A stretch of 64,000 bases of DNA from Macrostomum lignano. Its lineage: Eukaryota. A program made the translations under genes and the position numbers. The first letter of the stretch is position 1. Every line of letters begins with the position of its first letter. Shown one piece after another: positions 6,531-9,680 of this stretch. Below the pieces are notes generated by a model. The model was not told the origin of the DNA. It saw only the letters and a program-made list of their open reading frames with translations, and did no database searches. Where the stretch lies: positions 1-64,000 of the forward strand of contig NIVC01000019.1 in the NCBI GenBank assembly GCA_002269645.1, read 5' to 3'.

Positions 6531-8105
6531 AGTCAACTTTCTACTGCTCTACAAAGTTTACAGTAACTCACTCCCTCACTCACTGTGCATCTCAGCCCAC
6601 CCCAATCTTTTGTGTGTCATTTAGAAATTAAATATAAAAGGACCAATGGCTTGAGTTTGTTTGTGAGTGCGCATCGTTGGCAATGGTCAAAACCTGCCGA
6701 GAGTTTGGGCAAATGTTCTTTGTCTTGAGAACACACAATTCCGCATGAACTCTTCGTGTGAGTCGCCCTAACAGTATATTCTTAGACCGCTATTTGTAAG
6801 AAAAACCGCATGTGCAATTTCCGCAATAAATAGGCATACAGTCTTCTTTCCTGAAAGCAGTTTTTCGAAGATCCAAGGGCGTCTTCGAAAGTCCAACCGA
6901 GAGAGAAAATTTTATTCAATTCTTTGCAAAAATTAAAAACAGTTTTGTCTTTTCGTACGATTGATTCCAATGCTTGATATGCTCTGAGTCATGAAAGCAA
7001 TCCAAGTTGACTCCAAGTTGGCTGACTGCTCTACAGCTTATTAATTGGGCACTCGTTAGCGACCGCGAGCTGCGGAGCTGCGCAGAGGGGGCTGCGGTCG
7101 GGCGTGTCCTGCAAGCGGCAGCCGGCCAGGGAGTTCCATAGAGAGAATCTGGAGTGGCAGGCAGTTTGTTTTTAATTTGCTTTACCCAGCAAAAAATATT
7201 TGCCAATTCGCTCCCATTGAATAGGAATAAAGTTCCCTCAACTCACTCACACAAATATCGAATCGATTCAAGCCAAAGCCATGGAGTACTAAACTAGAAC
7301 TTTATTAGAACTCCATGTTGATATCTTTGAGTATCAGCTTTCCAGTTTCAGCCTCAGCTGCAAGCATTCATGTAAATTCGCCAGGATCTCATTGAGCACT
7401 AGTTAGCTGTCTAACAGTGCATGCCGCCGCAGAAAAAGCTTTTTCTTCCAAGAGTAATTTGGCTTCCCATTTGTTGGCTAATTTGCCCCCACCTGACAGA
7501 GCGTGCATGGTGTCAGTTTTCACGAACCAGATTTCTTCTCTGGTACTCCATGCAGTCGGCATTTACGATCGCAAGAAATTGCTGAGCTGGTCTCACGCGC
7601 TACCAGCATGTCGCGGATATCCCGCTGGAGGACTCCGCACCGCAGCGAAACACCCCCCCCCCCTCAAAGCAGCGACCCTTCTCATAGCAGCTCCCAGCAA
7701 AGCAAATGGCTGTTGCAGTGTCTTCACAATGCACTCGAGAGCTTAGAGAAAACCGAGGTTATTGATCAAGCCAGCTCAGCCCCGTGTTGCTTCGGCATAC
7801 TCAGCAATATGATTATGCAGTGGTGGCCAGTAGAGTCGCCACCATCGATTCAAAGGCGAGCGGCGCCACCCGCCACCCCACGATCTGCGCTCCACCGCAG
7901 CAGCAAAGTGAGTTGAATTCCCTCATGGTTTGCTTGCAGCTGGCTCTGGTGAAACACTGGCGTGAACTGAGCCCTGCAGGGGTAGCTCTCCCTGTCCCTT
8001 ATGTGTATATAATTGTTGTTAATATTTGCAACTCGGCAAATTACTTTCTGCTTAAGCTATACTCCACACTTAGCAAGCCAAAGAAACTCAAACCCAAAAG
8101 CAGTC

Positions 8106-8347
8106 ATGCTGAACTACAAGCAAGTGCAAGCCTTTGTGGCCGCGATGCTCGTCCTGGCTATGACAGGTAAGAGAGACATCGATCAGTAGTTTAGTGAGAA
8201 TTTGGTAACTCATCGATTTGTCACTCATTATGGACTCTGAAAACATTTGCGTCCTTTTCAGCTGCCGCCATCGAGGTGCCGGCCGACGAAGCCGGAGATG
8301 AGGCCGACTACGCTAGGCGCAGATACCGCAGGTGCAGCGTCCTGTAA
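8106..8347 (+). CDS. Two-exon small secreted peptide precursor, copy 1 (48 aa: MLNYKQVQAFVAAMLVLAMTAAAIEVPADEAGDEADYARRRYRRCSVL)
   Basis: TATATAA 8006-8012; ATG 8106; exon 1 8106-8166; 95-bp GTAAGA..TTTTCAG intron 8167-8261; exon 2 8262-8347; AATAAA 8528-8533. Signal-peptide-like N-terminus. Confidence 0.7.
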
Positions 8348-9680
8348 GCCGGAGGCGCCAATCAGCCCAGCGATGTGCAGGCCAGTGAGGCCCGGCTCAC
8401 TGACAGCTCTGACAGATCTTAATCGCTGCGGCAAAGCTTATTCTCGCTTTACTCTCTGGGTTGCAGGGAATGGTGAAGGCGCTGCTTGCTCTGTACATGC
8501 GGATTGTGGCTGCTGGCTTGGTGGGGAAATAAACTGAAGAAGCAGACAATTCAGGCACTCGATGCCTGATTCGGGAGTTCTGCTACCATCTTTTGGCAAA
8601 TTAGTTTGTTATGGGTTGTCAGTTCTATCCTGATCGAGGGTGCAAGCAGGAGGTTGAAACTCTCGGTGGCTTCGTCGGAATTCGGTTGCACCAAATAGGG
8701 CTCCTTAACGTGAAGGCGACCGAAAAAACGCCTGAGTTAAGCACGGGTGAGTGGCGAAGAGTTATCTCCAGGTTCTATTTGCGGTCTCCTTGGCAAAGCA
8801 GGCCCTGTTGATGTGCAGATCAATGTACCAGGTACAGGGTCGCTGCTGTCGAGGGGGGAAGGGGTTGGTGCGTTCCGGTGCAGAGTTCAAAGTGGGGTGG
8901 TTTGTTGCCGGGCGGGTCCGTGGCCGTGGGATATCCGATCCGTGACATGCTGGTAGCGCGTGAGACCAGCTCAGCAATTTCTTGCGATCGTAAATGCCGA
9001 CCGCATGGAGTACCAGAGAAGAAATCTGGTTCGTGAAAACTGACACCATGCAGGCTCTGTCAGGTGGGGGCAAATGAGCCATATGGGAAGCCAAATTACT
9101 CTTGGAAGAAAAAGCTTTTTCTGCGGCGGCATGCACTGTTAGACAGCTAATGAGTGCTCAATGAGATCCTGGCGAATTTACATGAATGCTTGCAGCTGAG
9201 GCTGAAACCTTTAATTAAAGCTGGAACTTCAAAGACTTAAGCATGGAGTTCTATTTGAAAGCTAGTTTAGTACTCCATGGCTTCTGCTTAAAACAGCTCG
9301 TAAATGTGGATGTTCAAAGTGATGTGAATTCTGATAACAATATCCATTGCACTTGCCAAGCTCCCAGATCATTTCGTACTTGCACCCTCGATCAGGATAG
9401 AACTGACAACCTATAACAAATGTATTTTGCCAAAAAAGATGGTAGCAGAACTCCCGAATCAGGCATCGAGTGCCTGAGTTGTCTGCTTCTTCAGTTTATT
9501 TCCCCACCAAGCCAGCAGCCACAATCCGCATGTACAGAGCAAGCAGCGCCTTCACCATTCCCTGCAACCCAGAGAGTAAAGCGAGAATAAGCTTTGCCGC
9601 AGCGATTAAGATCTGTCAGAGCTGTCAGTGAGCCGGGCCTCACTGGCCTGCACATCGCTGGGCTGATTGGCGCCTCCGGC

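Follow-up and report, generated by a model that had tools for sequence, protein, structure and literature searches.

Macrostomum lignano contig NIVC01000019.1 of assembly GCA_002269645.1 carries, within its first 64,000 nucleotides (nt; positions 1 to 64,000 of the forward strand, the whole stretch analyzed here and called the window below), three copies of a small two-exon gene for a 48-residue predicted peptide that, by sequence identity, is a member of the already annotated Mlig001779 family of hypothetical proteins. We conclude with good confidence that this spliced, transcribed gene is real, because five transcript-derived GenBank models have its splice junction and its stop codon in common. 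On this point the original prediction, which was made from the letters alone and proposed a genuine spliced gene, was right. The gene is not hidden, as had been proposed, since it has been public from the 2017 annotation onward as the hypothetical proteins BOX15_Mlig001779gN. The best reading of its product, to which we give about an even chance, is a species-restricted (orphan) secreted propeptide, with a predicted signal peptide that would be cut after Ala23.

The two-exon gene, its models and its copies

Read along the forward strand (+), the first copy, copy A, is laid out as follows.

8006..8012, +: TATA box TATATAA, from sequence reading
8040..8105, +: 5′ untranslated region (UTR), without upstream ATG and with two AG acceptors (exon starts 8057 and 8074)
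8106..8166, +: exon 1 coding part, MLNYKQVQAFVAAMLVLAMT plus the first base of Ala21, signal-peptide-like, from sequence reading
8167..8261, +: intron of 95 nt, phase 1, CAG/GTAAGA ... CCTTTTCAG/C (TTTCAG/C end), junction read through in the five models
8262..8347, +: exon 2 coding part, AAAIEVPADEAGDEADYARRRYRRCSVL plus TAA (TAA 8345-8347), from sequence reading
8527..8532, +: AATAAA polyadenylation signal, from sequence reading
ATG 8299 to TGA 8534-8536, +: overlapping open reading frame (ORF) of 79 amino acids (aa) in the +1 frame, with six Cys; its stop lies just past AATAAA

All of the framing elements that had been named for the gene, namely the TATA box, 5′ UTR, ATG, 95-nt canonical intron and AATAAA, were found by direct reading of the sequence. 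The ATG at 8106-8108 is the first one 3′ of the annotated 5′ end (~8040) and has G at −3. The ORF that opens at this first AUG stays in frame across the intron and, when spliced, gives the 48-aa MLNYKQVQAFVAAMLVLAMTAAAIEVPADEAGDEADYARRRYRRCSVL, in which the middle segment contains six Asp or Glu residues and the tail contains five Arg; the composition described for the precursor, including its signal-like N terminus, is thereby reproduced. The cis-splicing consensus of M. lignano is GT[G/A]AG / CAG, and the splice sites of the 95-nt intron agree with it (PMC8629364). The two acceptors in the 5′ UTR (8057 and 8074) are used by the GenBank models g12, g4, and g7. Spliced-leader trans-splicing at these acceptors is unsupported, as the sequences ACTTAG/C and CTTAAG/C mismatch the species motif YTNCAG (PMC8629364). 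In the mechanism we propose, the TATA promoter would drive an mRNA of ~0.4 kb, the first AUG of which would open the 48-aa prepropeptide. The statement that the gene had escaped the list of ORFs holds only trivially, for the unspliced exon-1 ORF measures 27 aa from the ATG and 58 aa from an upstream TTG. Rfam gave no noncoding RNA match anywhere in the window.

The 48-mer matches two annotated models, BOX15_Mlig001779g10 (70 aa, partial) and BOX15_Mlig001779g4 (72 aa), at 100% identity over 100% of its length, and the same core is found in the cluster members g2 (95 aa), g12 (77 aa), and g7 (64 aa, partial). These five Mlig001779 models are located on three contigs of GCA_002269645.1. They stem from genome-guided RNA-seq assembly, StringTie, TACO, TBONE, de novo assembly, and experimental 5′ and 3′ ends, followed by TransDecoder (PMC5730564). 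The junction between exon 1 and exon 2 (..LAMT/AAAIE..) is crossed in five of the five, and every one of them ends after CSVL. The g10 coding sequence (CDS) is 5′-partial and starts at the equivalent of window position 8040, 28 nt past the TATA box, which fits a TATA-directed start site. The N-terminal extensions by which the models exceed the 48-mer were considered as real coding sequence and rejected for g4, g12, g2, and g10 on their junctions or origins. In g4 and g12, the initial "MTAFGFEFLWLA.." comes from the 5′ UTR of a different copy, in reverse complement, g2 is two copies merged end-to-end at a noncanonical junction, and the extension of g10 is a 5′-partial read-through of the UTR. 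With these extensions set aside as implausible coding sequence, what the models have in common is the 48-codon ORF that opens at the first AUG. In g4 and g12, the antisense 5′ UTR exon is joined by GT-AG over 10-15 kb to the acceptors equivalent to 8057 and 8074 (10001-24741 in locus L001, on NIVC01000237.1, and 10001-20767 in locus L002, on NIVC01000089.1); such joins reflect either genuine transcription between copies, long-range or antisense, or an artefact of multi-mapping in duplicated DNA.

The gene lies within a larger duplicated unit, and the two other copies in the window, B and C, together with the three units, occupy the following positions.

9681..9922, −: copy B coding part (exon 1 9922-9862, intron 9861-9767, exon 2 9766-9681); peptide identical to that of copy A
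17224..17465, +: copy C coding part (exon 1 17224-17284, intron 17285-17379, exon 2 17380-17465); Tyr42>Trp (TAC>TGG)
7005..8651, +: duplicated unit A, ~1.1 kb of upstream region plus the gene
9374..11023, −: duplicated unit B, inverted, tail-to-tail with A
16256..17841, +: duplicated unit C, its upstream part broken by a long terminal repeat (LTR) element that ends at 16255

Three intact copies had been proposed, starting at 8106 (+), 9922 (−), and 17224 (+). All three are indeed intact, but copy C is not identical to the others, as its RRRYRR has become RRRWRR. The ~1.6-kb units A, B, and C have 98.2-98.9% identity over ~1.5 kb, and this level of 98-99% bears out the recent amplification that had been suggested. 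Units A and B make up a palindrome around a ~0.7-kb spacer, and the arms contain stretches of 574 and 658 nt at 100% identity. Units B and C are arranged head-to-head, with a 12-nt satellite and a young LTR retrotransposon (11431-16255) between them. Seven further intact copies are present on three contigs (loci L001-L003), where the three-copy arrangement occurs on two contigs of the DV1 assembly and a single copy on the third. NIVC01000089.1 runs collinear with the window at 97-99% identity, and NIVC01000237.1 does so more loosely. The presence of the same three-copy arrangement on two DV1 contigs indicates that the triplication is not an assembly artefact.

Across the 10 copies (three in the window and seven in L001-L003), the only coding change is Y42W, from one aromatic residue to another, and all 10 are intact, with no frame-disrupting variant among them. 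The 540-nt gene region contains 12 variable positions in these copies, two of them adjacent in the CDS (the Y42W event) and the other 10 in the promoter, UTRs, and intron. The intactness of all three copies, which had been pointed out, carries no weight, since the promoter, intron, and UTRs are conserved as much as the CDS, so that intactness reflects youth rather than constraint. The duplication itself is ordinary for the M. lignano genome, as 180 Mb of the DV1 assembly (312 Mb with repeats) lies in blocks at least 95% identical (PMC5730564). The copies would have arisen via local segmental and palindromic duplication, in addition to this genome-wide redundancy.

A repeat of ~350 nt is also found in the upstream region of each unit (7267-7618, 10410-10761, and 16387-16738), and a fourth copy, more diverged (80-98%), lies at 8938-9292 in the spacer of the A/B palindrome. 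This repeat may be a small mobile element.

The predicted peptide and competing readings of the locus

The N terminus of the 48-mer is signal-like, with Lys5 in the n-region, the core AFVAAMLVLAM (mean Kyte-Doolittle hydropathy 2.7), and A21-A22-A23/I24 in agreement with the −3/−1 rule. The uncharged hydrophobic core comprises 11-15 residues (mean Kyte-Doolittle 2.5-2.7) between Gln8 and Thr20, a length that is short for a membrane span and suits a signal peptide better, and the six acidic residues that come after it favor translocation of the C-terminal part. When a signal-like filter that the 48-mer passes is applied to the 249 first-ATG ORFs in the window with 30 aa or more, only 1 passes; this filter is ad hoc, was devised after the peptide had been seen, and is only indicative. 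On this heuristic, the signal-like N terminus of the original prediction is supported. Residues 1-23 would accordingly be a candidate cleavable signal peptide, and entry into the endoplasmic reticulum would be post-translational because the chain is so short. The 25-residue propeptide IEVPADEAGDEADYARRRYRRCSVL (net charge −1) would then travel the secretory pathway.

Furin and related proprotein convertases follow the rule R-X-K/R-R, and the tail offers an optimal motif of this type, R-X-R-R with extra Arg at P5 and P6. Basic cleavage sites are present in the tail, R39-R40-R41 and R43-R44, and RRRYRR/C fits R-X-[K/R]-R. A furin or proprotein-convertase cut at R39-R40-R41-Y42-R43-R44/C45, together with carboxypeptidase trimming, would yield an acidic 15-mer, IEVPADEAGDEADYA, and the tetrapeptide CSVL. 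An acidic context around Tyr is typical of tyrosine sulfation, and Tyr37 of the 15-mer has such a context. If left uncleaved, the propeptide would instead be zwitterionic and 25 residues long, with a single free Cys and a tail rich in Arg. The product may thus be an acidic 15-mer instead of the cationic mature peptide that had been envisaged, and the anatomy of the tail does not support the latter. The basic segment RRRYRRCSVL has only 10 residues, its five Arg are the convertase site, and the mature 25-mer has a predicted net charge of −1. Because the arginines are themselves the convertase site, processing would destroy the cationic part and not release it.

A word-indexed search of 5.8 billion clustered proteins with the 48-mer as query returned only M. 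lignano models, and an exhaustive HMMER scan of 1.84 billion representatives added one more protein of the species, UniProt A0A1I8FGA5. No homologue outside the species was found in either set, and the lineage restriction that had been proposed holds in this respect. Pfam gave no match at E ≤ 10 for the peptide and none for the 79-aa ORF, A0A1I8FGA5, or eight ORFs of the 1.6-kb unit and spacer. Exon 2 was also considered as a relic of the C-terminal exon of a small GTPase and rejected, as there is no GTPase signal anywhere in the 1.6-kb unit.

Several findings weigh against a secreted propeptide. The signal-peptide evidence comes from the heuristic described above rather than from a trained predictor, and the C-terminal CSVL, placed after a polybasic run, resembles a cytosolic prenylation signal. 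Hallmarks of neuropeptides are missing in the precursor, with no Gly before either basic site and no repeated peptides. The predicted peptide also has no orthologue in the protein databases searched, no Pfam family, and no literature record. There is no selection signal among the copies either, the comparison of 1 coding event in 147 nt with 10 variable sites in 394 noncoding nt being not significant and powerless. Finally, A0A1I8FGA5, an older ML2-assembly model of a 263-aa fragment whose source label is "Secreted protein," carries PKAV, exon 1, and AAAIE exactly, and then reads ~16 exon-2 residues in the +1 frame, with five substitutions. This model is unrelated to the window on either side of the common stretch and, when used as the query in a protein search, was itself the sole match. 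Its own locus is either a diverged, frame-disrupted partial copy or the product of an indel or assembly error, and the model stands as a caveat, not as a refutation.

The same observations feed a rival account, in which transcription of the locus yields nothing functional. Here the frame would be young and possibly de novo, its signal-like N terminus and charged tail would be due to chance, and the copies would be too recent to have decayed. We regard this as a possible, though not a probable, explanation. It draws on the orphan status of the peptide in two very large protein searches and in Pfam, on its short length and low complexity (Ala-, Arg-, and Asp/Glu-rich) in GC-rich DNA, and on the equal conservation of CDS and noncoding flanks among the 10 copies. 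In addition, the longer, overlapping 79-aa ORF lies on the same mRNA, open frames arise easily here, the diverged ML2 model abandons the exon-2 frame, and the gene identifier is missing from the searchable neoblast, germline, and reproduction gene tables. Countering these points, the frame starts at the first AUG, passes in frame across a canonical intron, and lies downstream of a TATA promoter. A signal-like N terminus is moreover rare in background ORFs (1/249), and the annotators' coding-potential step picked the 48-aa frame in all five models despite the longer ORF.

We consider it quite unlikely that the product is a cytosolic or membrane micro-protein in which RRRYRR-CSVL would be a polybasic run followed by a geranylgeranylated CaaX box (X = Leu) and the N-terminal helix would be a second membrane anchor instead of a cleaved signal. 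C45-S46-V47-L48 fits the Cys-aliphatic-aliphatic-Leu motif, with Cys at −4, Val at a2, Leu at X, as preferred by geranylgeranyltransferase I, and five Arg directly upstream. Ser is tolerated at a1 of a CaaX box, and Cdc42- or RhoA-type tails closely resemble RRRYRR-CSVL. AlphaFold2, run without an alignment, also gives two helices, 4-24 and 28-46, although this model (mean predicted local distance difference test score of 77) adds little. Prenylation requires a cytosolic C terminus, however, and Lys5 before the core, the six acidic residues after it, and the A-A-A/I site favor translocation of the C terminus and signal cleavage. For a transmembrane span the hydrophobic core is short, neither the peptide nor the 1.6-kb unit shows homology to a GTPase or to any other protein, and a Cys at −4 may arise by chance. 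The original prediction had itself noted that the CSVL end resembles a CaaX box and would conflict with secretion; the motif is present and striking, but topologically at odds with the signal-like N terminus.

Even less probable, in our estimate, is that the mRNA is read differently, with the 79-aa ORF of the +1 frame or a three-exon form giving the real product. The first of these exceeds the 48-aa ORF in length, and A0A1I8FGA5 follows exon 2 in the +1 frame, but the 79-aa ORF does not open until the fourth AUG, lacks a signal peptide, and has neither homologues in the protein search nor a Pfam match. The three-exon form had been raised as an option in the original prediction, and its splice sites do exist and match the consensus well. 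The donor CCT/GTAAGC (8343/8344) and the acceptor TTGCAG/G (exon from 8467) would give an end in ...CSVLEW and a stop. The 48-aa frame and its CSVL end are nevertheless what five of the five GenBank models contain.

With the secreted propeptide kept as the preferred reading, a more specific version of it can be formulated, which we put forward as improbable in its full detail. In this version, a Macrostomum-specific secreted signaling or defense propeptide would be encoded by a set of near-identical genes, palindromic and dispersed. Furin-type cleavage at the Arg-rich tail would yield an acidic, possibly Tyr-sulfated 15-mer, or else the uncleaved product would be an Arg- and aromatic-rich effector with Y42W as a functional variant, and the new family would act in mating, adhesion-release, or microbial defense. 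No searchable paper text contains "Mlig001779," the UniProt accessions, or the peptide strings, and they are likewise absent from the searchable supplements of PMC5730564, PMC5816591, PMC7336406, PMC5977470, and PMC8662610. Nothing in searchable papers and supplements speaks for a role as an antimicrobial or toxin or in reproduction, or for tissue specificity, and nothing relevant was found in the literature on secretory and antimicrobial peptides or in single-cell atlases. The proposal of a specific effector or antimicrobial role is not supported and is in part contradicted by the way the tail is built.

Should the peptide prove to be made and secreted, it would be an uncharacterized, species-restricted peptide in a flatworm model for regeneration, bioadhesion, and sexual conflict, and the locus would be a clean case of a micro-gene kept as near-identical palindromic copies. 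RNA interference and promoter-reporter transgenesis in M. lignano could quickly test the function of the peptide. As things stand, the gene is one among very many orphan, duplicated "hypothetical protein" models in M. lignano, with a gene model that is already public, and the findings point to no specific activity of the peptide.

Other features of the window

The interval between units B and C is occupied by two repeats. The 12-nt satellite TGAGTGAGTTCA (~32 copies, 11027-11409) lies between unit B and the LTR element, which itself has the following position and structure.

11431-16255, +: young LTR retrotransposon, with 166-nt LTRs at 11431-11596 and 16090-16255, 2 mismatches, and TG..CA ends

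The element is inserted into the upstream region of copy C and is flanked by a 4-bp target duplication, CCAT (11427-11430 and 16256-16259). A primer-binding-site-like sequence, TGGTAGCAGAGC, is located right after the 5′ LTR, and a purine tract precedes the 3′ LTR. Gag (DUF7041), protease, reverse transcriptase, RNase H, and integrase domains are present, split over several ORFs.

Further downstream, a 28-nt satellite, CCTCCCAGATCCTCAGTTGCTGGGCCAG, is repeated ~344 times with 95% matches over 41402-50832. It is because of this satellite that the region forms a block of 63% GC in which long "ORFs" are open in all three forward frames. A DUF4081 Pfam match in the same interval is weak and was rejected as spurious, the underlying DNA being satellite sequence. 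Numerous other minisatellites are found at 32-38 kb and 53-64 kb. An uninterrupted ATG ORF of 329 aa at 51629-52618 (+) has a strong Pfam match to MRP-S35, a mitochondrial ribosomal protein (E = 1e-37), and is the only conserved nontransposon protein-coding gene recognized in the window.

Comparison with known precursors

The order of parts in the Mlig001779 48-mer, a signal-like segment, an acidic segment (6 Asp or Glu in 15 residues), and a basic C terminus, is the same as in precursors with an anionic propiece and a cationic peptide, such as Hydra arminins, amphibian dermaseptin-type precursors, and alpha-defensin propieces, and the gene is likewise small, lineage-restricted, and locally duplicated. 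A cationic antimicrobial mature peptide, however, usually has at least 12 residues, is amphipathic, and is released at a defined site from its acidic propiece. Unlike these precursors, the Mlig001779 peptide has a basic part of just 10 residues with five Arg and no amphipathic body, lacks a separate cleavage site between acidic and basic parts, and has a predicted mature net charge of −1. A releasable cationic peptide, the defining feature of anionic-propiece precursors, is absent, as the only processing motifs are the arginines themselves. There is also no homology to a described antimicrobial precursor family, either in Pfam (E ≤ 10) or in both protein searches.

With prohormone and neuropeptide precursors, which are processed by furin or PC2 and carboxypeptidase E, the 48-mer shares a signal-like start, a short peptide ending at RRR/RR, and an R-X-R-R motif, and the surroundings of Tyr37 are acidic, as in sulfated peptides. 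In contrast to prohormones, it has no amidation Gly, no repeats, and no flatworm orthologue in the databases searched, and its C-terminal remnant would be only four residues long. The tail resembles the polybasic-CaaX tails of Rho, Rap, and K-Ras4B in its polybasic run, the Cys at −4, the aliphatic a2, and the Leu at X. The whole protein, in contrast, has 48 residues and no GTPase domain, and its signal-like segment predicts a luminal or extracellular tail, whereas prenyltransferases do not act in the lumen or outside the cell.

The Drosophila Bomanins and sex-peptide-sized precursors (45-55 aa) are similar to the Mlig001779 peptide in size, in having a short intron just after the signal-coding part, and in their TATA box. 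Like the Mlig001779 genes, Bomanins also occur as clustered, near-identical copies with a restricted taxonomic range; unlike them, the 48-mer has no CxxC or other family motif, and there is no sequence relationship between the two. By analogy, then, the Mlig001779 gene appears in architecture and size most like short, lineage-specific secreted-peptide genes such as the Bomanins, and we file it provisionally as a small orphan secreted-peptide gene.

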